Assembly (NCBI GenBank): GCA_004431415.1
Contig: QPMI01000036.1
Coordinates: 186,001 to 250,000 of the forward strand
DNA from: Cyanophora paradoxa CCMP329
Lineage: Eukaryota > Plantae > Glaucophyta
Length of the DNA: 64,000 bases
Direction: 5' to 3'
Every line of letters starts with the position of its first letter. Position 1 is the stretch's first letter. Positions 111 through 15,333 of the stretch are shown here, piece after piece. The notes under the pieces were generated by a model. That model saw nothing but the letters and a program-made list of their open reading frames with translations, was not told the origin of the DNA and did not search any database. A program made the translations under genes and the position numbers.

Positions 111-805
111 GCACAGTCGAATGAACCAAATGCATGCACGCCGTTACGGCAGAGACTGAGACTGATCATGATGTGCCACGGTGCCACGGTGATCATGAGT
201 GTGAGACAGTGCATGCGCATACGCAACATGTCCGACGGTCCGACGGTCATGATGTACATGTACTGCTGTGGTACAGCCACAGCAGCACGCGGGCCTCGCC
301 GCGAGCCTCGGAGTCACTGAGTCATGCACGCAAATCTCCGGTCCGCGGCCGTTATATATATTACAAGATAAAGCCTAGCAAGTTGCACGAGCTATAAGAA
401 CTGTCGCGCGGCGCCTAGAGCAACGTCGCCCTGGCGGGCTTCGTGCCGAGGAATTCGAGCTCGGCGACACTAGTACTGAAAGCACCCGTGCACAAACCGA
501 TGCCCGTGGCCATTTGCGAGGATCCGGAGCTCGCGATCGGCGCATATATACGAGCTCGAGCTTGTTGCCCCCGGGACGCGCACCGGCTCCTTGCGCATGC
601 CCTTTCTCTCGCGCTCGCCACGCCGTGACGGCCGCCTGTGGCCTGTGGCCATGGCAGCTGCAGCTGGCCATGGCCGTTCGGGACTGGCAGCTGGGCCGCC
701 CGCTCTTTGGTGAGGGGTCTGCAGGGGCCCGAGTCAGGCATGCGCAGGACTCGACATGGCGCCGCGCGCTGCGCTGCGCCGGCGTGGCGGGGCGTACGGG
801 CGCGG

Positions 806-3800
806 CTAAAGGCCGGCGGCGGCGGCCGCCTCCTCGATGGAGGCGAGCTCAGCACGGACGGACTCACACTGCCGCCTGAGCTCCTCCAGTTCGGCGGCGC
901 CGCGCTCACGGGCGAGGTCCGCTGCTTTCGACGCGTCCTTCAGGTCTTTCAGCTCCTGTCTAATGACTTGGCGGTACCGTGCAGGCAGCTGCTTGCGGAA
1001 ATCCGTGAGCCAGGCATGCGCGTGCACGATCGCCTGTCAAAACGGTCAGATCTATAGCTATCCCCAGAGATCGATCAGCTCGTCTCGCGTACCTTCTTGG
1101 AGACTCTCTCCACGATTGTTTTGTAAGTGTCATCCGTCTTCAGGACCTCCAGAATGTCCTCCAGGCAGACCTCGCTGCAGGGGCACACCTGCTTGCGGCG
1201 CTTCGAGCTCTGCACATGCACATTCGTCGGCAGCGCGTCGCGCGACCGCTGGGTGCCTTGGGTGCACCGCAGGCGCGTTGGAAAGGGCCTCGAGCACCGC
1301 AGCGCTAGCCGCACGCCGCCTGCGGTTGCGGCCCTTGCGCTTCTGGGCAGCCATGAGCGGGGCAAGCTGCATGCGCAGCCGCTGGCGGCGCCAGCACGGC
1401 ACGGCGCACGGCGCGTGCAGCGGCAGCGCTGTCGACGACGTTGGCAAGCTCGTAGTGAAATTCGTCCAAGACAGCGATGAGGAGATCGTTTTTGATGAAG
1501 GCCCACGCATCCCTGACGACGTTCTTGAAGACTTTATCTACCGCCGCCTGCAATCGCCTGCGCCGCATGCGCATTCCATCAGCGACCAGCCGCAGTGCCA
1601 GCTGCAGCAAGTGCACGTGGCAAGGTGGGCGCACGGATTGGACGTGCTGACGATGTTGGTGTAGGCGGCTTCCACGGCCATAGATTGCAGATCTAGACTA
1701 TGTACATGTTGGTGTAGCGCCGGCAGTACGGGGCTGCACTGGTCGATGAGGGCCTGCTTCCAGCGGGGGAAGACGGAGCTGTTGAGGATGCGCTGGAAGA
1801 CGGGGCCGATGCACTTGATCTCCTCGATGAAGCGCTTAAATGAGAGGCCGAAGAGGACAGAGTGTTCCAGGCTCTTCTGGTCCACGTCGCGCCCAACGGA
1901 CCCCACAGCATCATTTCCAAACCGATTCTTGAGAAGGCCCTGCACCGTCTGCGCATACTGAAGATAAGCGGCCAAGGATCGCGATCGCAGCAGCGCGTGG
2001 CGCTGCCAGGCTGCAGCTGGACACGCACGGAGCTCAGGAAGTCGGTCTCGGCATCGCGACAGGCCTTATCCCAAAACTCCCCGAATTCCTTACCGAATTC
2101 CTTGTCGACGCTAGCCATTACGCTATGGCCTCCGCGCTCCAGCGTCTGCACCTTGCTCAGCTGCCGCTGCAAGGCCCGAAACGCGCCTTGCAGCATCTCC
2201 TGCAGCTTCTTTCGATCCGCCGCCGCTCCCAACGACGGCAGCTTGAGAGTCTGCCACGCCGGGGCATGAGCGCAAATCAAAGCAGCGCAAGCAGACGCTG
2301 GCGGGGCGGGGCGGCGTGCGTTCTCGTAGAGGAGCAGGCCGCGGGTGAGGACGGCATGCGCTGGCGCGTAGGCCTTCTCTCGAAGACGCTGGAGGACGAT
2401 CTTGCAGCCCTGGCCCCTCAACAGCGCCATGATCTCCGCGTAGTCAGGGCGAGCCGTGACGGGCATTGCCTGTGCAGCCTCATGCCCCTCCACGGCGAGC
2501 GTTTTGAAGTACTTCGGCCCCGCGTTGTAGGTTCCAAAGAAGAGCCGCTTACGCCTGCGAAGCCCGTGGCATTGGCAGTGGCGGCGGCGCTAGGGCCCGA
2601 GCTTGAGGGGGGAACACACGCTGCAGAACCCCACTGGCTTGCGGGGAGCTGACTTGCCCACTCCTGAGGCCCGCACATGTAACGACAGGGGGGGCGGCGG
2701 GCAGCGCGGGCAGGGGCGCACCTGAAGGGCGCTGAGCCGCCGGCTCTTCATGGCCGATCGGATGCTCTGGACGTCGACGTCGCCATCGCCGAGCTCGCGC
2801 CTGGGATCGCACGCGATAAGGACAGCGTGCTCCTCAGGTCGGGCAACGAGGTCGCCGAGAGGCTCCTGGAGGGAGGCAAAGACAGCCAACGGCGTGTCGC
2901 CTCCCGAGTCGACGTGTACGAGCATGTCCACAGGCTGCACTGCTCGTGCTGCCTCCCGCCGCGCTGCATCGGTCTCCGTCGAGCCCACGCTGTCGACCTG
3001 CCGCCCCGGCCTGTCAGCTTACGCTTGACGGACCGCGGCGTGCGGAACGCAGGATGCGGCAGCGGCTGCACCTGGCGGAGGCCGACGCAGTGCGCACTCG
3101 GGACGCCCATCTCCACGGAGCGGACGAGGCCCCAGCAGCCGCCATTCACGTTGGCAGTGAGAAGCGTGAGGACACGCCCCACGCCCCGCTTTGCCTCCTC
3201 CCGGTCCGTGCAGGCTGTGTCCAAGCCGGGGCCGCCCCAGGCGTCAACTTGACGACTCGCAATCGACAAGCTAGAGCTCGCGGAAAGGCCGGTCTGGCGC
3301 ACCGGAGTGGTAAAGCACGGTCTTGCCCAGCAGCTCCTCGAAAAGCATAAGCTCCCTCGGCAGCTCGAAGTGCTCGGGGCTATCGGCAGCGATCAGCAGT
3401 GACAAGTTCCAGCGCGCGAAGGATATTAATATTGCGCATGCAAGGCGCACGTGAGGCGGTCAACGTCGTCGAGCGTTGCGGGCGTCAGGGACTCATTGCC
3501 AGCCATGGCGAGGGCGAGGGCGATTGCGGCGCGCTCCTGCATCCCTATGCGTGCCTCGCTGTCTTCGCGGTCCAAGTCGCGGATCTGCTCAAGCGCTGCC
3601 AGGCCCGCGGCCTTCGCGTCATCGCGCTCCTTCCGGTCTTTGAACGTCACGAGCACGTAGAAGAAGGGTGAGCCGAGCGTCACGATGGGCACGCTGCGGG
3701 GCTGTGAGGGTCGCGATTGGCGGCGGGGAGAGCGGGGGCGGCAAGCCTGCTGGTCGCGTTGACGGTGCGGCTCGGAAGGATGCGACCGGACACAAAAATG

Positions 3801-6800
3801 CCCTTCTCGTTGCCAGCGCGCGCCTCAAGGGCGTTTAAGAGGTGCCGTATACGTTTGGCAAGTTCGTCTTGTGGGGCGCCGAGAATCTCCCGTAGGCGCT
3901 GCACCTGGTCCATTGGGCGCACCGGCATCGAAGGTGCTGGTGAGCACCCGAAGCGCTGTGCATGGCGTTAAGGTTGGCACCGGCACGAAGTCTATCGGCT
4001 CACATCGGGGGAGCCGTCGGGGTCGGCAGGGAGTGCGGCAACTGCAGCGATGAGGCTGGCAAGTAGGGCGAAGTCCGCTGGCTTGGGAAGCCCGTCACAG
4101 ATGAGGCCCGAGAGGCACGTCGACTTGCCTGCCGGGCGTCGGAGGAACTGGTCAGCACGGGCGAGAGCGGCTCGAGGTGGGCAGGCCTAGGTGTTGAAGC
4201 GGGCGCGGCAGCGCTAGCGCACCGGCGCGGGTCCACCCCGCGAAACAGTTCTGCTGGAGGGCGATCTCGTCGATGGTCTTGTCATTGATAAGCTCCTGTA
4301 CCTGTGTACCAAGCTCCTTCACCTGCGCTCCCGTCGCGCCGGCCCCTCGAGCTCGCCCCGCGGCACACCCGCGAAGCCCAGCGCGCCTCGAGCTCGGAGT
4401 GGTCCCGGAGCGAGTCGGCGCCAATGTCGATCGTGATGCAGGCCTGGGAGGCGGACGCCCGGGCGTTGAGGTTCGCGATCCGCTTCGCCCAGTGTTGCGT
4501 ACGGCGCACCACATCGACGGCGTCTGCACAAAAGCCCGTGAGCGGCGCGGGCATCCAGAGACGGGCCAGAGTGGGCGGGGCGGGCCTGCAAGGCCAGCGT
4601 TGCGCAGGCCAAGGCGGTCGAGAAGGGCGAGCAGCTGCGCCTCAGGGACAGCTGGGCCCTCAGCACGAACTAGTTTGTCCTCGTACTCGGCCGGGTGCTC
4701 CCACACCAGCTCCTCTGAGAAGGTTCCATTGAATCGCCGCCGGAGCTCGAACGTGCCCTTCTGCTTGTTAAGGCGAGACTGCGGCGGACCTCGCAATCGG
4801 AATGGCCGGGATGGGGAGTTCGGGGTCGGTCAGCAGGGCGCACGAAGAGGATGGCCTCGCCGGGGTACTGAGGGTCCTTCAGCTCTGTTTCGTTTTCGCG
4901 GAGCTCTATGAAAGGTTATAATTAGCGGTGAGAGCGAAGCGCGGAACTCGGAAGGCGGCAGAAGCGAAGCGCGCACCCCATTCGAAGTTGATGAGGTTAG
5001 GGACGTGGATGACCGCGCCAGCATTGATGATGCGGAGGGCTGGAGCGCACGGAAGAGGCCAAAGCAGCTCGTAGACGCGCCGGCGCCCGCCGCCGGCCTC
5101 TTCGATTCGCAAGGCAAGCGTGAGGACGACTTGCGGAGGGCAGCCTGCGGCGGTCGGCGAGCCGTACTGGCTCTTCGTGACGCGATTCTCTCTCTGCACA
5201 GGCCGAATAAGGCAGGGCGTGGCAAAGGTAGAGGCATGCCTAGGGCGGAAGGCGGACCTCATGAAGGGAGAGGATGGAGATGCTGACGTCGGGAAAGCGC
5301 TCGGCGAGAACCGCAAGAGCCACCGCGTCCGCGAAGGATTCGAGCTCGGGCTCGGGTTCAGCGCGATCCATCACGAGCTTGAAGGCCCTTGCTACCGCCA
5401 GCTCGCGATCGGTGGAGTCCGCCAGCTCGGTCGTCTCGCCCAAAATGGCGAAGGCCTGCCAGGCGAGCTCGACCAGACTTGGCAGCACTGGATGCTCAAC
5501 AAACTTCAACGCAGTCTGCACAGGGCGGTCGGCCAGCGGACCAGCGGCCGAGCTCGAGGCCTACAGGCGCGCAGGCAGCGCGGACCTGGGCCCAGAGGTC
5601 CGTGGCGATGGCGGCGCGCAGTTCGCCCTCCAACGCTGCGCCACGGCTGGATGCACTGTCAGGCCTAGGCCTGGGCCTACTGTGCGAGCGCGAGTCCAGG
5701 AGGGCCTAAGAGTGGGGGGACGGGGGGAAGGGAAGGGGGCGGACTGGAGGGGGGCAGGGGGGGGAGGGGGAGGAGGGGGGGGGGGGGGGGGGGGGCGGTA
5801 GGGAGGGAGGGGGAAGAGCGGGGGAAGAGGGGAGGGTGGAGAGGAAAGGGAGGGGGAGGGAGTGAGGGATGGAGGGGGTTGGGGGGGAGGGGAGGGGGGG
5901 GGAAGGAGGGGGGGGTAGTTACGCACAACAGGCTGGCGGCAAGGACAGCGAAGAGGCTACCACGGACGGCATCGGGCCGGCAGCCGATGGCTTTGTAGAT
6001 GTCGTCAATGCAGGCGACAGCTGTGGGGCCACCGGCGAGCCGAGCAGCGCGGACGTTTAGAGCGCACGCCGCCACCCGCTCCTCGACGCCCATGTCCGAG
6101 ATCTTGGACTTCAGAAACGCCAGGTCCTGCACCACATTGTTTGGCGCGGCTCCAAACGGAGCGCGGCGGAATGGCAAAAGGGCAGACGCAGTCCGGACCT
6201 TGACGACAACCTCAACCGGAAGCCCCTCCGGATTCTGCTTCTGGTCCTTCTCCGCCTCCTTTGTCTCCGGTCCTTCCTCGTAGCTCCAGGGGGCGGCTGC
6301 GATGAGATTCAGGGCAGCCACCGATGGCGGCAGAGTACACGCTACCCGTGTCCTCTCCACGAGCTGGGGCGTCCGTGGGGCTCGACCCCTCCCCTGCTCC
6401 CGTCGGAGGGGTGCCCATCAGCGGAGCGGCCACCGACGGCGCCCGTGCGGCCACCAGCGGCGCGTCCACCGACGGCATCCGCGCGGCCGCCAGCAGCGCG
6501 GCCACTGACGGCACCGCCGCGGCTGCCAGCGGCGCGGCCACCGACGGCGCCGGCGCGGCCGCCAGCGGCGCGGCCACCGACGGCACCGCCGCGGCCGCCA
6601 GCGGCGCGGCCACCGACGGCGCCGGTGCAGCCGCCAGCGGCGCGGCCACCGACGGCACCGCCGCAGCCGCCAGCGGCGCGGCCACCGACGGCGCCGGTGC
6701 AGCCGCCAGCGGCGCGGCCACCGACAGCACCGCCGCGGCCGCCAGCGGCGCGGCCACCGACGGCACCGGCGCAGCCACCAGCAGCGCGGCCACCGACGGC

Positions 6801-8112
6801 ACCGCCGCGGCCGCCAGAGGTGCAGTCATTGACGGCGCGATCTCCAGCCGCGTGCAGTTGGCCGCCAGCACTGCGGCCGACGGCGGTGCGGCCGCTGATA
6901 ACGGCTTTGTGGTGCGCTTGCGGGCGTGCTTGGGGCTCGGCTGGGGGACGCGTACGCCGTCCGGATCCGAGTCGGCCTCTGGCTGAACCCGCGGCCGGAA
7001 GAGCTGTTTAACGGAGACAGTCTGCCCGTCGTGCAACTTGACCTCAGCCTTATGAAGCGCAAGCGAGTGCGCCGGCCCGCCGGTGACGCGGCTCCAGACG
7101 TCGCCAGCCCAAGTCCGCCCCTCGGAAATCTTCGTCTCTCCGTCCTCTTCGAACTCCACCATGCCTGGTTCCTGACACACCTGCATTCACACAGCAACAC
7201 CCTGAGCCTCGGGGCGAGGCGGGGGCGCGGAGGGGAGGAGGCGCCGTGCAGACGGCGGGGCGCACGCAGCACGTGTATCCGTACAGGGAGAGTGTCATGC
7301 CTGGGGCAACCATGCCTTGGTGGACGAGCATGCCTAGGCCGCAATCCTTGCGGGGCCCCCTCGACCTCTTCCTTGAACTCGAGCTCGAGACAGCCGCGCT
7401 CAGGAGAGCCGGCGCATGGCCATGGGTCCCGGGGCCCTGCAAGGGGACGAGGTGCAAGAAGAGTGATCAGCGGGGCCGGTAAGATCCCGAGCTCACGGCG
7501 GACGGCGCGCACGCTTGCGACTGCGCTCGAGGTCGAACTCGGCAGAGGCATGGCGCTGGCGCTGGCCAACTCATGCATATGCACGTACGCGTTCGAATTC
7601 CCGGCCGCAAACAGCTGCAGCACCGAGTCATCGGCAGCGAGCTCGATTGCGAGAATGCACTTCCTCGATATCTGCGCGTACCGTTCCCTCGCTTATTCCC
7701 GGGAGTCCTTGCGTCGTCGACGTCGATGGGGGCGCTTCGCGCGCGTGCGCATCAAACTTGTGCTCCGTCCCAAACATCCGATCACGGGCTGCAATCGACA
7801 AAGGTCAACCGTGACTGACCACACGCGTTCGCGCGCTCGCTCGAGGCCAGCATATGCATGTGTACGGCGGCAACTACTAGGCTAGGGACATATACATGTC
7901 AACTCGGCCGGACCACTCTAGAGCCGCTTGCAAAATTCAACGGGGACCGTCAGCGGCGGCCCGCGGGAGCCCAGCGCGCGCGGGCGGGCCTCTGTCGCAC
8001 AGCGCGCTCTAGAAAGCTGCCGCAGGCGACCACGCACCTTGCAGGACGCTGTGGAAGCGGTTTGTCGTGCTCGACACGATGTGTCCTTTGATGCCGAGGT
8101 GTGGACCCCCAT
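806..8112 (-). CDS. Large multi-exon protein: MGxxxS leader, RAMA-like domain, Ala/Pro 12-aa repeats, inactive OTU-like domain, dynamin-superfamily (NUGGC/SLIP-GC-like) GTPase and helical C-terminus
   Basis: Splicing the GT-AG intron 4129-4222 builds the P-loop CFAGWTRAGKSTCL. Downstream are LLNAL…ILPSRTVNATSVPIV…FYVLVTF and VRSVEMGVPS…GLRQVDSVG (G3 DxxG, ~2985-2997), then long helical exons ending …EEAAAAAGL* at 806. RAMA-like segment GLGMLVHQGMVAPGMTLSL…EDGETKISEGRTWA…DGQTVSVKQL lies at ~7000-7345. The 5' exon structure is uncertain. Confidence 0.7.
5714..5916. repeat. G-rich low-complexity tract with long G runs inside an intron of the GTPase gene
   Basis: Runs of G interrupted by A, seen directly. 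Confidence 0.85.
6421..6840. repeat. 36-bp tandem repeat, ~11.5 copies, alternating two variants; encodes (SVAAPLAAAPAP/SVAAPLAAAAVP)n on the minus strand
   Basis: Unit gcggcgcggccaccgacggc… recurs every 36 bp (e.g. 6421, 6601, 6781). Confidence 0.95.
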
Positions 8113-8159
8113 GTCGGGCCAGACCGTCCGGCGCGGGGCAGGGTACGCAAAAGCGTTCT

Positions 8160-8325
8160 CGCGGTCCGACCAGGTCGGACCGCGGGGCCGGGAGTACGCG
8201 GATTTCGAACCAAAGCGCCGATTGCTCCCCGGAGGGAGGGGTGAGGTTGCACGGGGGTAGCAATTGGCGCAGCGTCGGTCGCGGACGGTCCGCCGGCGCC
8301 GGTGCGAAATCCGCGTACTCCCGGC
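8160..8325. promoter_or_regulatory. Hairpin (12-bp arms, 8160-8184) plus 25-bp inverted repeat (8187-8211 / 8301-8325) upstream of the minus-strand ATG; also present in copy 2 (11219-11384)
   Basis: cgcggtccgacc-a-ggtcggaccgcg, and gccgggagtacgcggatttcgaacc versus ggtgcgaaatccgcgtactcccggc (one mismatch). A TATA-like ctatatat sits at ~8431. Confidence 0.7.
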
Positions 8326-8711
8326 AGACCAAGCTAGCCTGGCAAGCCTCGTTAGCGCTAGCTTCGCGTACCCACTATCTATCACATAACCCGTAGTACT
8401 AGTACGGTACCGGTAGCTAAGCTATCCCAGCTATATATCCCGCTCAGCAGCGGCTGGACAGTGTTGACGTCGACGTACGCGTCGACTAGTACTCCCCTCA
8501 CGCACGGTGCGCCCCGGTCGTGTGTGCCGTGCGTGAGGCGAAGGCCTCCCGTTACAAAAGCGCTTTATCCGGCGGCCGCCGCCTCCTCGCGCTCCAAGCG
8601 GTGGTCCGCGATCCGCGCGTCCGACGGTCGGGCCTCTAATGGTAGCCTCGCCGAAAGCCAAAACGAGCTCGAGCCAAACGAACAGCAGCTGCAGCAGCAA
8701 CAACGAAAGCG

Positions 8712-9350
8712 ATGCGGGCTCTCCTCCTCGCCGCGCTGGCGCTTGCGGCCGCGCTCCTCGACGCGCAGCCGGCCCTAGCTGGCGGCCACAGCACCCGGTG
8801 ACCAACGCACAGACTCCTCGCTCAAATTGAAGCATGCGTCGGTGGCACGTGCGTTCCCACAGGCGGAGGTGGAGGCCAGGGCTGTACAAGCAACTCCCAG
8901 TGCTGGCCCCTGATCTGCGACACCATCGCCACGACCTGCGCATCGTGCACTGCAGACTCGCAGTGCGACCCCGCCGGCAACACCGGCTATATCTGCGGCA
9001 GCAGCGGGCAGTGCATCAGCGCCAGCGCTACCGCCACGCCGTGACCGAGCGCCAGCCCGAGCCGCACGCCCTCGCCCAGCGCCAGCCCGTCGCCCTCTCC
9101 CTCGCCCTCGCCCTCGGCCACGCCCTCGCCCAGCGCGACGCCGGCCGCGACGCCGACCGCGAGCACGTCCCCGAGCCCCTCGCCCACCGCCGCGGTGACC
9201 CCCCCCCTCCCCCCCCCTCCCCCCCGCCCCTTCCGCGGGGCGTGCGACTCGGGGCGGGGGCGGGGCCCGGGGCAGCCGACGAGGGTCCTGGACCTCGCCT
9301 TCCTCCGCAACGCGTACCCCGACGTCGTCATGTGCACCTCTCCCCGCCGG
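8712..9350 (+). CDS. Secreted Cys-rich protein (signal peptide + 8-Cys domain), stopped by in-frame TGA at 9042-9044 before a Ser/Pro/Thr stalk; 3' part missing in this copy
   Basis: MRALLLAALALAAALLDAQPALA, intron, then GGGGGQGCTSNSQCWPLICDTIATTCASCTADSQCDPAGNTGYICGSSGQCISASATATP*PSASPSRTPSPS…. Confidence 0.6.
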
Positions 9351-9685
9351 CTTCATGACTCAGTGATCAAGCTTCAGGTTTAGTTTAAATAAGCTTCAGC
9401 TGCAGGCTTTAATTTCAGGGTTTCGAAATTCGAATTCTGAGTTCAATGCAAGTTTCGAATTCGAATTCGGCCCAACCCCCCTGCGATTTTTGATCATAAG
9501 CTTTTTAAGAACATCGATATAGACGATTCGCAAATATTAATTGAATCGGGTTTTAATTTGGGGTAGCTATAGTACTAGTGTCGGTTGATCATGAGCCCGG
9601 CCCACGGCCTGAATTCATGAAAGAAACACTTGCAAATATTGGGCATTTCATATAAGACACAAGACGACTTCAATCGAAAGAACTC

Positions 9686-11171
9686 CTAATGATCATGATA
9701 GGAGGGGTGCACGTGCTTGGGGAGCTCGAGGTCACTGGGTCTGTGCATGTGGCCAGCGATCAGCTCACACGCAGCCTGGTACACGGCTGCATTGCCTGCC
9801 CCGCGCTGCTCAACCCATTTCACCGGTGTGAGCATCATCTACCGATGAACCACGGTCACGTTGGGGGAATTCGCACGGGGGGGGGGGGGGGGGGGTTTGG
9901 AGCGCACATCGTAGTCACGGGGCAGCGTGACCGAGTTGCGTTCCACAATAAAAACTGCGCATGCGCGAGAGGGCTTATGCCATAATACAAAAAGCCGGGA
10001 AGCTTGAAATCCAGCTTGGAGCAGCGCATGCGGACCAGGGAACTTCTGCAGCCGGAGTCGGTGGTGTGCATACTGCGCGGGGGCGTACTTCAGTGTCGCG
10101 CGGCAGCACACACTCTCGGGTCTGCGTGCAGAGAAGGACCTGCATCTCGTCGTCGCAGTTCCTGGACGCCAGGTACGCTGGCGAGAGGAAGCAGATGAAC
10201 GAGTGGCAGTGGGCCATCGCATCCTGCTCAGCAGACTGAGGCGCGCTGCGGTCCGGGGCCGGCTGCACCGCTTGCGCACCCCGATTTCCTTCATCCACAG
10301 CTGGCCCGGCTTAAGCTCGCGGTCGATCCTGCACCGGCGTCGGGTGTCAGCGATAGCGATGTGCGGCCAGGCGCCGGGGCGGGGCGAGCCAGATGGAGAG
10401 CCCGGCGGCCTTGAGGATGTCGCAGTACCGGAAGACGACATCGGCATCCGCGTGTGCATAACTGCGCGCGGCGGTCATGATCAGGCCCCAAGCATCCACG
10501 GCGGACAGGCGCGCGTGCCATGGGTAGGGAAGACGGCGCACGCGCCTTACGAAACAGTCCCACTTCTTGACATTGTCTGTGACGACCGGCGCTGATATCG
10601 GCTTTTGTGGCGAGCTCGGCAGAGGCATGGCCGTGGCGCTGGCCAACTCGAGCAAGTTCCGGGCCGCAAACAGCTGCAGCACCGAGTCATCGGCAGCGAG
10701 CTCGATTGCGAGAATGCACTTCCTCGATATCTGCGCGTACCGTTCCCTCGCTTATTCCCGGGAGTCCTTGCGTCGTCGACGTCGATGGGGGCGCTTCGCG
10801 CGCGTGCGCATCAAACTTGTGCTCCGTCCCAAACATCCGATCACGGGCTGCAATCGACAAAGGTCAACCGTGACTGACCACACGCGTTCGCGCGCTCGCT
10901 CGAGGCCAGCATATGCATGTGTACGGCGGCAACTACTAGGCTAGGGACATATACATGTCAACTCGGCCGGACCACTCTAGAGCCGCTTGCAAAATTCAAC
11001 GGGGACCGTCAGCGGCGGCCCGCGGGAGCCCAGCGCGCGCGGGCGGGCCTCTGTCGCACAGCGCGCTCTAGAAAGCTGCCGCAGGCGACCACGCACCTTG
11101 CAGGACGCTGTGGAAGCGGTTTGTCGTGCTCGACACGATGTGTCCTTTGATGCCGAGGTGTGGACCCCCAT
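9686..11171 (-). CDS. TIR-domain protein (TIR_2/bacterial-like) sharing the MGxxxS leader exons of the GTPase gene
   Basis: Spliced product …KKWDCFVSYAHADADVVFRYCDILKAAGLSIWIDRELKPGQLWMKEIGDAMAHCHSFICFLSPAYLASRNCDDEMQYAHHRLRLQKFPVFIVERNSVTLPRDYDMMLTPVKWVEQRG…* with TAG at 9686-9688. It matches TIR box1 (DxFxSY) and the S-x-[W/N]-C-x-x-E motif. The 5' exon structure is uncertain. Confidence 0.85.
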
Positions 11172-12310
11172 GTCGGGCCAGACCGTCCGGCGCGGGGCAG
11201 GGTACGCAAAAGCGTTCTCGCGGTCCGACCAGGTCGGACCGCGGGGCCGGGAGTACGCGGATTTCGAACCAAAGCGCCGATTGCTCCCCGGAGGGAGGGG
11301 TGAGGTTGCACGGGGGTAGCAATTGGCGCAGCGTCGGTCGCGGACGGTCCGCCGGCGCCGGTGCGAAATCCGCGTACTCCCGGCAGACCAAGCTAGCCTG
11401 GCAAGCCTCGTTAGCGCTAGCTTCGCGTACCCACTATCTATCACATAACCCGTAGTACTAGTACGGTACCGGTAGCTAAGCTATCCCAGCTATATATCCC
11501 GCTCAGCAGCGGCTGGACAGTGTTGACGTCGACGTACGCGTCGACTAGTACTCCCCTCACGCACGGTGCGCCCCGGTCGTGTGTGCCGTGCGTGAGGCGA
11601 AGGCCTCCCGTTACAAAAGCGCTTTATCCGGCGGCCGCCGCCTCCTCGCGCTCCAAGCGGTGGTCCGCGATCCGCGCGTCCGACGGTCGGGCCTCAATGG
11701 TAGCCTCGCCGAAAGCCAAAACGAGCTCGAGCCAAACGAACAGCAGCTGCAGCAGCAACAACGAAAGCGATGCGGGCTCTCCTCCTCGCCGCGCTGGCGC
11801 TTGCGGCCGCGCTCCTCGTCGCGCAGCCGGCCCTAGCTGGCGGCCACAGCACCCGGTGACCAACGCACAGACTCCTCGCTCAAATTGAAGCATGCGTCGG
11901 TGGCACGTGCGTTCCCACAGGCGGAGGTGGAGGCCAGGGCTGTACAAGCAACTCCCAGTGCTGGCCCCTGATCTGCGACACCATCGCCACGACCTGCGCA
12001 TCGTGCCGTGACCGAGCGCCAGCCCGAGCCGCACGCCCTCGCCCAGCGCCAGCCCGTCGCCCTCTCCCTCGCCCTCGCCCTCGGCCACGCCCTCGCCCAG
12101 CGCGACGCCGGCCGCGACGCCGACCGCGAGCACGTCCCCGAGCCCCTCGCCCACCGCCGCGGTGACCCCCCCCCTCCCCCCCCCTCCCCCCCGCCCCTTC
12201 CGCGGGGCGTGCGACTCGGGGCGGGGGCGGGGCCCGGGGCAGCCGACGAGGGTCCTGGACCTCGCCTTCCTCCGCATCGCCGGCCTCGTCGTGCGCCCCT
12301 CTCCGCCCGC
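10615..12310. repeat. Segmental duplication copy 2
   Basis: See copy 1. The 91-bp deletion is at ~12006, at a GC microhomology. Confidence 0.97.
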
Positions 12311-13094
12311 CCCGCCGCCACCCGCCCACCCGCCCCCGGCCCGCCCCGCAGGCGGACCTCGCGAACCTCACCGCCTCCGGCAAGGCCGTCGTCCAGAGCG
12401 TGCGCCCCCGCCCCCCCTCGATCGAAGACGTCGAGGGCGGTCGCCCGCGCTGGATGCGAGGGGCGGTCTGACGGGTGGGGCAGGACGGCTCCGTGCGCGT
12501 GGCCATCGACGCCCCCCTCTAGAACGCCGTCCAGGGCGGCGGCGACGCCGTCTTCCGCATCGCCGGCAGCGGCTTCCCCGTGCTTGCTGCCCCCGGCCCC
12601 GCCCCCGTGCTCCCCGCCCGACGCCCGCTGCAGGTCGGCGAGAAGATCGCCGTCTTCATCGTCAACCCCGGTGCGTGTACCCCCTCTGTTCGGCTCTCGA
12701 CGGCTGACGCCTCGGCAGCGACGGGGGAGTCCCGCCAGGCCCCCTACGCGGAGATCACCTCCGCCGGAGAAATTCAGTTCAGTGCGCGCCTCTCCGGGCC
12801 CTTCCGCCTTCCCTCCTGGCTCTGAGATGTCGCAGCCGCGCCCAGCTTCGCGCGCCGCGCGCTGCAGGCGATGGCCGCCAACACGCCCTACGACGTCCGC
12901 ATCGTCTTCGTGAACGGGGGGTACGTCACCCTCGTCCTCGGCGGGGTGCGCCACCGTACCTTTCCTTCTATCCCGATCTCCGCCCCACCTCCCCTTGAGA
13001 CCCTCCGCAGGTCTTCCGCTGGGTCAGCGTCGCCGCGACCAACTCGGTGCCTTACTACCCGAACGCCGCCGCCGCCGCCGCCCAGGTGCTTTAG
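11770..13094 (+). pseudogene. Secreted Cys-rich/Ser-Pro-rich surface glycoprotein with C-terminal beta-rich domain, frameshifted
   Basis: Signal peptide MRALLLAALALAAALLVAQPALA. The 91-bp deletion removes half the Cys domain and shifts frame. Downstream exons include PTRVLDLAFLRIAGLV, VGEKIAVFIVNP, PYDVRIVFVNGGYVTLVLGG and VFRWVSVAATNSVPYYP…*. Confidence 0.55.
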
Positions 13095-14000
13095 GCCTCT
13101 CGAGTCGCTCAGCTCTGGCGAATCGCTGAGCCAGGCCGCAGGGCGCCGGCTTCCTGGCGTCCATCCTCGGCGCCCTCGTAGCGGGCGCGCTGGCCCTCTG
13201 CTGAAGGAAGTCGCGTTCCCGTACATGATTCTGCCGCAGTGCTGCCTGCATAAACCCTTTGAAAGCACCCTTGTTTCGCTGCGTTTTTCGCATTTAAAGA
13301 TTTTTTTGGCTCTAAGTTTCGCATAAGTTCGCTTAGTGCTTCCGTTTCATTTTTGCAGCGAGACAGCTGTCAGTAAACCTTACATGTACAGCTGCAGCTG
13401 CAGCTATAGCTATAGCTATAGATGATTATTTTTGCATGTGCAAATGCATTGTGCCTGCAGGCGCAATTTATAGCGAGGATAAATAGAATAAATACATCCT
13501 GAATGATCATGATCGTGCCACGGTGAACGATCGACAAGTTCGGCCGCGGATCTTGCGCTAAAAAGCCTGCCGCTGGCCGCTGAGCCTCGGAGCCTCGAAA
13601 ATCCCGGACTCCATGCTCGCCGAGTCGGGAAGCACGTCACTGCCAGGCTGCCACGCGGCTGATCATGCCATGATGACTCATGATCAGTGAAAGCCACAAA
13701 AACTTGGAATCTAAGAGTTACTGAGTTCGAATGAATTCCGGATCCGGCCCAGCCTGGCCCATGGCAGCGCTCATGATTTGCCACCGAGCGGCCCGGCCCG
13801 GCCGCGGCTCAAATCTAGAGCCGAGATCCGATGATCTAGACTCTGAGATCTTGATTTAAATTCTACCCCGGCCTGCCCCCGTTGCGAGCCTGATCACTGA
13901 GTCATGAGGCTCAGCGGCTCATGATCGTAATCAATCGGATATCGATCCCAGGGGAGGGGATGGCAGGCGCGGCGGGGGAGCCTTGCCCTGCGAAGCGGCT

Positions 14001-15333
14001 CTAGAGCTCCCCGGAGGGCTCCTCGGGGGCGGCCTCGGGCGCGGCGGCCGCCCCGGGCCCCGCCGGCGCCTTGCTGCGGGCGGGGCGGGGGGGCGGGCCC
14101 AGCGGGCGGTGACGTAGCGGACGGGCCGGTCGGGGCGGGCGGGTCCCACGCGCAGAGGAGGGCGGCCTTGCGGACGGCGCCGCTGAGGCGGGCGGCGGCG
14201 ACGAGCTCGCGGGCCGCAGGGGCAGCGGGGCCCCCGCGGGGCACGCGACCGCCACCGCCACGAACGACGCGTGGCACAGCGACGGCTCCCCTGCCCCCCG
14301 CCCCGCCCCGCTCAGCTCCGCTCCGCCCGCTCAGCCCGCGCCGCCCCCACAGCGGCCCCGCCGCGCGGCGCACCGGGGTACACGAGGAAGTCGCCCCCGA
14401 ACTTGGTGCCGGGGGTGAGGGCGTACCCCCGGTCGCGCAGGTCGGAGTAGACGGCCCAGCGCACCCCGCTCGGCGCCACCGCCCGCCCCGCGAGCGGCGC
14501 ATCCGCCTGCGCGAGCGTCGGAGGCGCCGCCGGCGGGGCGGAGATGGGGCGAGGGTCGCACGGGACCCCGCCAGTCGGGGCACGTCCGCTCGCACGCGAC
14601 CGCGACGCGCGTGAAGGTGCCCCCGCGCCCCTCCCCCGCCCCGGGCCCCGGCCCCGTCCGCTCCCGCTTCGCCGACGGCTCCTCCTCCGCCGGCGCCGCT
14701 GCCGGGGGCGGCTCGGGGCTGCTGGCGGAGGCGGGGCCCCTTCGGCCTCGCGGCGCTGGCGGCGGAGCTGCTGCTTGCGGGCCGCCTCGTCGGCGCGCAC
14801 GGCGCGGTAGTAGGCCGCGTTCTCCTCCTTCTGCCGCGCCGACTCCGCCGCCTGCCGCGCCCACTCCGCGGCGCGCGCCTCGCGGAAGGCGGCCGCCTCG
14901 GCCGGCGAGGGCGCCGGGGCCGCCCCCGCGTCGTCGCGCAGGCGCGCCCAGCCGCGCTCCGCGCACAGGCGCGCCTCCTCCGGCGTCAACCGCAGCGGCA
15001 GGCGGCCCTGCACGCTCGAGGCGCCCGCCGCGGCGCCCTTCCTCGCCGCCTGCGGGGGCACGCCGGCGAGGGCGCCCACGACGCCCCGCCGGAAGCGCAG
15101 CACGCCGGCGTCTGCGGCCTCGTCAGCCGCGCTCGGGCGTGTGCGGGGGCCGCGGGCGCGCCCTCGTGGCTCCAGACGAGGACCTCGCCGCCCAGCGCGT
15201 ACGCGTCCACCACAGGGATCGGGTCCTCGGGCCCGCCCGGGCCGGCGCGCTGCGCGGGGCCCTCCGGGTCGTCGATCCCCTCCACAATCACGTATCCGTT
15301 GAGCAGGTCGCGCTCGATCGCCCCCGCAGCCAT
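14001..15333 (-). CDS. TSEN34: tRNA-splicing endonuclease catalytic subunit Sen34
   Basis: LRFRRGVVGALAG…LPLRLTPEEARL, VYSDLRDRGYALTPGTKFGGDFLVYPG…HASF and LVAAARLSGAVRKAALL. The 3' end is approximate. Confidence 0.88.

Follow-up and report, generated by a model that had tools for sequence, protein, structure and literature searches.

A TIR gene of the glaucophyte Cyanophora paradoxa that probably arose as a chimera, with the promoter and first exons of a neighbouring RAMA–dynamin-like GTPase gene

In a 64,000-nucleotide stretch of the Cyanophora paradoxa CCMP329 genome (contig QPMI01000036.1, positions 186,001 to 250,000; the whole stretch is called the window, and all positions are counted within it), two unrelated minus-strand genes begin with the same promoter and 5′ exons. 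One of them, called gene A here, encodes a large protein with a predicted RAMA fold and a dynamin-like GTPase region; the other encodes a short TIR-domain protein. Each shared 5′ region also adjoins a copy of a plus-strand gene for a Cys-rich surface protein. We consider it likely that the TIR gene is a one-off chimera, produced by partial duplication of the gene A locus. The initial annotation had instead seen a candidate defence island, in which interchangeable immune effectors are plugged onto a cassette that supplies a promoter, a surface protein and a leader with a myristoylation signal. The features of the locus are listed in Table 1.

Self-BLAST of the window paired 7534-8948 with 10611-12006 and 9038-9348 with 12005-12311, and the repeat of about 1.7 kb reported in the initial annotation is present twice. 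Its core (7603-8948, 1346 nt) differs between the copies by one substitution and one one-base gap, and the 273 nt beyond it by one substitution; the ends of the 91-nt deletion in copy 2 share a 2-nt microhomology. Read contigs were examined over 7001-12990 of the window, and at this contig level transcript starts, strands and levels are approximate. The DNA unitig common to both copies (7603-8948) had a depth of 57.4 in run X5, against 23.5-29.7 on the unique flanks, and of 165-212 in run X1, against 75-99. All four repeat edges were spanned by DNA unitigs, and the common unitig was unbranched. Because of this twofold depth and the unitigs over the four edges, the duplication is real and the genome contains exactly two near-identical copies, copies diverged by more than about 10% being invisible to the depth test. 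The idea that one copy is an assembly artefact could appeal to a core identity near 100% and to a missing base at 11695, which shows that small errors exist. However, the doubled depth recurs in two independent DNA runs, unitigs span every edge, and there are RNA contigs specific to each copy, so that this idea is scarcely credible. The missing base is a T that is absent from the window and present both in copy 1 and in RNA contig 20 of copy 2, probably an assembly error.

In RNA, the shared 5′ exons are spliced to the bodies of both genes. A fused transcript is shown by RNA contig 12, which extends from exon-2 letters across every exon of the TIR gene; the internal exons of the published TIR model total 289 nt, matching the unlisted middle of this contig. 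For gene A, the RNA pieces comprise 7001-7177, 7263-7435 and, by depth arithmetic, 7512-7615 plus 17 letters, so that its RNA support covers the 5′ end (7001-7698). The TIR contigs (depth 17-21) and the gene A contigs (depth 6-7) both terminate in exon-2 letters, and the common RNA unitig has a depth of about 23-25, near the sum of the two. As expression is poorly measured by contig depth, the depths serve here purely as a consistency check. Homolog searches returned the published models g9058.t1, from an open frame over the TIR gene, and g9056.t1, at 100% identity to a piece of gene A; both correspond to EukProt EP00741 entries. Under their shared promoter, the TIR gene and gene A may be co-regulated. 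As the initial annotation had stated, alignment shows the two genes parting right after AMPLPSS; the fusion point of the TIR gene lies within exon 3, at 10610/10611, and is in frame.

The RNA contigs revise the leader itself. Exon 3 of the TIR gene begins at 10673, and the adjoining stretch, translated earlier as ISRKCILAIELAADDSVLQ and taken for an exon (ISRKCILA), is skipped: loose ends in the RNA join 10674 to 10741. Binned depth calculated with zero coverage on 10674-10740 is expected at 13.80, and 13.8 was seen. The frame of this stretch is open, which we estimate would happen by chance in about one case in four, but its RNA coverage is zero and it was rejected as an exon; it is spliced out as a 67-nt intron. 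In the resulting form, in which exons 1, 2 and 3 are joined, the ATG of MGVHTSAS (11171/8112) opens a frame of 56 codons that is out of frame with the protein and stops in exon 2. Both published proteins start at a different ATG (10836/7777) with MFGTEHKF. This start lacks Gly2, and Met-Gly with Ser6 is not found, so that it contains no myristoylation motif; the myristoylation-type start proposed initially is an upstream open reading frame (uORF). The uORF (11171-10752; 8112-7693) has a strong start context and runs across the true start codon of each gene, and it could hold down the translation of both. In the promoter region, a palindrome of 25 nt (8160-8184) and an inverted repeat, also of 25 nt (8187-8211/8301-8325), lie a short way upstream of where the minus-strand transcripts have their 5′ end; neither occurs elsewhere in the window.

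The TIR protein matches Pfam TIR_2 (PF13676) with 74.4 bits against a cut-off of 28 (E 1.4e-20). Its Glu141 is invariant in five paralogs and aligns with the catalytic-position glutamate of Cat1, and the protein is likely an NAD+-cleaving enzyme. It is without a sensor domain and probably cytosolic. Weak matches to many bacterial TIR defence proteins were obtained, none of them near the curated cut-off. The TIR paralogs of Cyanophora share 39-53% overall identity, and the four closest carry different N-termini: a leucine-rich repeat (LRR) region in two, a SAM domain in one and an unrelated sequence in one. The introns at 10545 and 10389 of the TIR gene have GC donors. RNA contig 17 (run X17) keeps the 81-nt intron 9955-10035, which adds an in-frame insertion of 27 residues after the catalytic helix.

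Gene A has a single paralog, tig00001098_g7068, among 5.8 billion proteins, with 35% identity over most of its length. Homolog searches were run with single exons and with the published proteins, joined exons serving for frame checks. Sequence searches of gene A against Pfam, NCBIfam, PADLOC and PDB were all blank. In particular, a Pfam profile search gave no RAMA match, and an ESM feature search with the RAMA piece was blank. A structural model was built on the corresponding domain of the paralog, with gene A as second row of the alignment, and reached a predicted local distance difference test score (pLDDT) of 87. It matched the C-terminal domain of CcrM (Z 10.2, root-mean-square deviation (rmsd) 2.5, 81 aligned residues) and the RAMA domain of MPND (Z 9.1, rmsd 2.0, 80 aligned residues), the next fold scoring only 5.7; the atlas matches of the paralog domain were all PF18755 RAMA, with TM scores of 0.65-0.72. 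Modelling thus confirms a predicted RAMA fold for the N-terminal domain of gene A. For the C-terminal half, the ten best named matches by ESM Atlas features all belong to the Dynamin_N family or clan, with scores of 0.93-0.95 to Dynamin_N clusters, SLIP-GC-like ones among them, and both gene A and its paralog contain the G1 and G3 motifs. A dynamin-like GTPase is thus well supported, and GTPase activity would be expected. The TIR and RAMA assignments of the initial annotation stand, whereas its OTU-like part was not confirmed: the structural model stays under a pLDDT of 50, searches of Pfam, PDB and known folds returned nothing, and by eye there is no Cys at the expected spot. According to the alignment with the paralog, the published model of gene A probably takes a C-rich intron (about 5925-5647) as coding.

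To which family the promoter and leader first belonged is suggested by the start of the paralog. The protein g7068 begins with MPGTKRKSDA, in which 5 of the 9 residues after Met match gene A. Shuffling gave p values of 5e-6 to 1e-5 for this decapeptide, and only 1 of 88,455 background 10-mers scores as high. At the same nine positions, the four TIR paralogs match at 0-1. Because the start of g7068 matches and those of the TIR paralogs do not, we take the GTPase family to be the original owner of promoter and leader, and the TIR gene to be the chimera. In the opposite direction of transfer, the TIR gene would have owned promoter and leader, and gene A, as a 5′-truncated member of a larger family, would have captured both. 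The complete surface gene lies beside the TIR copy and the TIR transcript forms the deeper contig, as this would predict; however, g7068 opens with the homologous decapeptide and no kinase, and the TIR paralogs do not share it, which makes such a transfer quite improbable. If the 18-nt difference between the two leaders were a deletion in the TIR copy, it would support the direction of capture; it resolved into three 6-nt insertions in gene A, and the argument was dropped.

These insertions lie in the fringe beside the fusion point. Over its 57-75 nt the copies differ by the 18-nt indel and 7 substitutions, and the indel consists of three in-frame insertions of the form X-revcomp(X)-X, all in gene A (7573-7600). 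Once they are taken out, the leaders of gene A and of the TIR gene align without gaps. Such palindrome-scar insertions, in frame within a coding exon of gene A, lengthen its protein. The opposite edge of the repeat (about 9310-9348) is likewise diverged. Substitutions number 7-8 per 57 nt in the fringe and 2 per 1618 nt in the core (Fisher p 5e-11), that is a divergence of about 12% at the edges against 0.1% in the core. Because diverged edges surround a near-identical core, the pattern fits an old duplication, the core of which underwent gene conversion in recent times. This conversion needs no selection, because introns and a pseudogene are covered as well.

Neither copy of the surface-protein gene can make protein, because in-frame stops occur in both, copy 1 is truncated and copy 2 is frameshifted. 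The letters agree between DNA and RNA contigs. Copy 2 is transcribed and partly spliced, and a Pfam search with the surface gene returned no family. The working surface protein that was thought to be co-expressed with the effectors is thus a pseudogene at both sites. RNA contigs of other genes align to 12217-12312 at 90-99%, which points to expressed relatives of this pseudogene elsewhere in the genome; loose ends in the RNA likewise lead to related genes. The supposed defence island comprises three genes, and its right-hand neighbour (14315-15103) is a housekeeping gene for a tRNA intron endonuclease subunit (PF01974).

Table 1. Features of the locus, with positions counted in the window
Feature	Position	Strand	Remarks
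Duplicated segment, copy 1	7534..9348		gene A promoter, probably native, with its 5′ exons; 5′ part of the surface gene
Duplicated segment, copy 2	10611..12311		heads the TIR gene; without 91 nt matching copy 1 8947-9037
Shared exon 1	11097..11205 (copy 1: 8038-8146)	-	holds uORF ATG 11171/8112; 5′ end inferred from binned depth
Shared exon 2	10741..10847 (copy 1: 7682-7788)	-	holds protein ATG 10836/7777 and uORF stop
67-nt GT-AG intron	10674..10740 (copy 1: 7615-7681)	-	RNA joint and zero coverage; earlier read as ISRKCILA exon
Shared divergent promoter region	8147..8711 (copy 2: 11206-11769)		between the minus-strand genes and the surface gene
Diverged fringe, gene A exon 3	7534..7608	-	compared with TIR copy 10611-10667: three in-frame 6-nt insertions, 7 substitutions/57 nt
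TIR gene tig00000144_g9058, 221 aa	9686..10836	-	about 58 borrowed leader residues (probable), then TIR_2 with Glu141
Gene A tig00000144_g9056, 1696 aa	806..7777	-	leader, RAMA fold (predicted), Ala/Pro repeat, helical region (resembling OTU by eye alone), dynamin-like GTPase and helical stalk; exon mapping
RAMA-fold domain (predicted)	6985..7345	-	about aa 97-185, two exons; 36% identical to paralog domain
Ala/Pro/Val spacer	6347..6910	-	in-frame 36-nt tandem repeat; not in paralog
Dynamin-like GTPase region	809..4325	-	G1 GWTRAGKS (aa 874) split by intron 4222-4129; G3 DSVG (aa 1146)
Surface-protein pseudogene, copy 1	8712..9348	+	signal peptide, Cys-rich repeats, Ser/Pro stalk; stops 8799, 9042; truncated
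Surface-protein pseudogene, copy 2	11770..13204	+	full length, hydrophobic C-terminus; stop 11857, 91-nt frameshifting deletion, TAG 12520

The cassette reading keeps one point in its favour, which is that a single 5′ module heads two unrelated genes. Yet the depth test shows only two near-identical copies, and no transposase or recombinase, target-site duplication or terminal repeats were found at the repeat. The MGxxxS frame is not the form seen in RNA, the surface gene is broken in both copies, and the fusion falls within an exon, at a point with no recombination motif; the leader, moreover, appears native to the GTPase family. We therefore regard a mobile or recombinational cassette as very unlikely, and by the tests run the locus belongs to no cassette or mobile-element class. 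A match to P0003, an integrase repeat, was attributed to chance. A palindrome-rich 17-mer occurs at 9353 (minus strand), where it adjoins the right edge of repeat copy 1, and at 13891 (plus strand), with 12 nt of it at 315 and no further occurrence in the window. It was rejected as a transposon end: there is no target-site duplication, and all three sites fall between convergent genes, where palindromic scars are dense. Its recurrence is probably convergent.

Partial duplication would account for these observations as follows. In the ancestral locus, gene A would have stood head-to-head with the surface-protein gene, with one promoter between them. A local duplication may have taken this promoter, exons 1 and 2, a portion of exon 3 and, on the other side, the 5′ portion of the surface gene. 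The duplicated piece would have been joined in frame, within exon 3, to a TIR body from the expanded TIR family of Cyanophora. The product would be a TIR protein of 221 residues carrying the first ~58 residues of gene A, mostly of low complexity, and driven by the gene A promoter. The edges would later have diverged by about 12% and gathered insertion scars, while ectopic gene conversion across 3 kb homogenised the middle 1.7 kb and also spread the stop codons of the surface gene. Another course, a single tandem duplication with a TIR donor downstream, was rejected, as neither a TIR remnant nor a matching terminator is found to the right of 13204.

Several points weigh against this reconstruction. 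The direction of capture is read from ten residues of one paralog protein. The fringe pattern would look the same if a recent duplication had hit a related leader of greater age. A search near the locus yielded neither a TIR donor nor another TIR remnant from which the course of the rearrangement might be traced. Contigs show presence only, and a minor isoform joining exon 1 to the ISRK stretch, in frame, could have dropped out. The RNA label of runs X15 and X17 is a tool's guess; spliced joints show that they are RNA.

Tandem or partial duplication is a known route to new, chimeric genes, as surveyed in Drosophila (PMC4503668) and in rice (PMC3673630). The present locus resembles these chimeras in its breakpoint within a gene, in the in-frame joining of a 5′ regulatory region and first exons to the body of another gene, and in the parent gene next door. 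In contrast to them, its near-identical core has diverged edges, as in concerted evolution, and the genome contains no near-identical donor for the TIR body.

A role in immunity is known for TIR NADases, a group with the amoebal members TirB, TirC and TirD (PMC13142454). The Cyanophora protein is like the short TIR_2 NADases (Cat1, Thoeris ThsB, CBASS and Pycsar effectors, TirB/C/D) in its TIR_2 match, its catalytic-position Glu and its variable, shuffled N-termini. It differs from them in lacking a partner operon as well as any domain for sensing or oligomerisation, and in scoring far below the curated cut-offs of the named defence families. RAMA domains are associated with DNA binding and restriction systems (PMC4738411, PMC9963953). 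Structures of the CcrM C-terminal domain and of MPND are RAMA domains that bind DNA with no clear preference for N6-methyladenine, a preference disputed even for MPND (PMC9963953). The gene A domain would share their fold (PF18755; Z 9-10 over about 80 residues), but it is fused to a dynamin-like GTPase and not to a JAB deubiquitinase, a methylase or a nuclease. A bacterial dynamin-like protein (DLP) protects against phage (PMC8844932). With bacterial DLP and NUGGC (SLIP-GC) GTPases gene A has in common G1 and G3, a long helical C-terminal region and Dynamin_N language-model features; unlike them, it is too divergent for Pfam, has about 110 residues inserted after G1 and an N-terminal RAMA domain, and its relatives were found in Cyanophora only.

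These precedents invite a functional reading. Selection might have kept the shared promoter and leader identical so that the GTPase and the TIR NADase are produced together and act in one defence pathway, for example with TIR proteins clustering along polymers that the GTPase builds on foreign DNA. It is conceivable, though doubtful, that the RAMA-dynamin GTPase senses foreign or modified DNA while the TIR NADase, under the same promoter, 5′ untranslated region and uORF, serves as executor kept in step by gene conversion, a two-gene module of bacterial style newly assembled in a glaucophyte. Such a selected pair would add a function to the chimera history and would not replace it. The TIR gene has retained its frame, working splice sites, Glu141 and transcription beside a decaying surface gene, which speaks for the pair, as do the RAMA, dynamin-like and TIR precedents. 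On the other hand, the homogenised stretch includes introns, intergenic DNA and pseudogene stops, as under neutral conversion, and the three insertions in the leader of gene A indicate weak constraint. The pairing also has no relative outside this genome: in protein searches, relatives of the gene A family were found in Cyanophora only, viral contigs gave none, and 40 metagenome TIR loci (23-44% identity) held neither the cassette nor the GTPase. We thus judge selection on such a pair unlikely. Returning to the chimera by partial duplication, an immune role is plausible by analogy and from the survival of the TIR gene next to a decaying neighbour.

The process that formed the locus is textbook, and its component genes are undescribed in the literature found; neither Cyanophora TIR genes nor RAMA-dynamin fusions are the subject of any paper that we found in a literature collection that is incomplete. 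Under the partial-duplication reading, the locus would offer a transcript-supported snapshot of how the large TIR family of Cyanophora gains N-termini and regulation, by capturing the promoter and first exons of a neighbour, with the direction of capture readable from a paralog and its age from insertion scars. Should the two genes prove to be co-induced and to cooperate, they would form a defence module built through a shared promoter, of which eukaryotic examples are rare.

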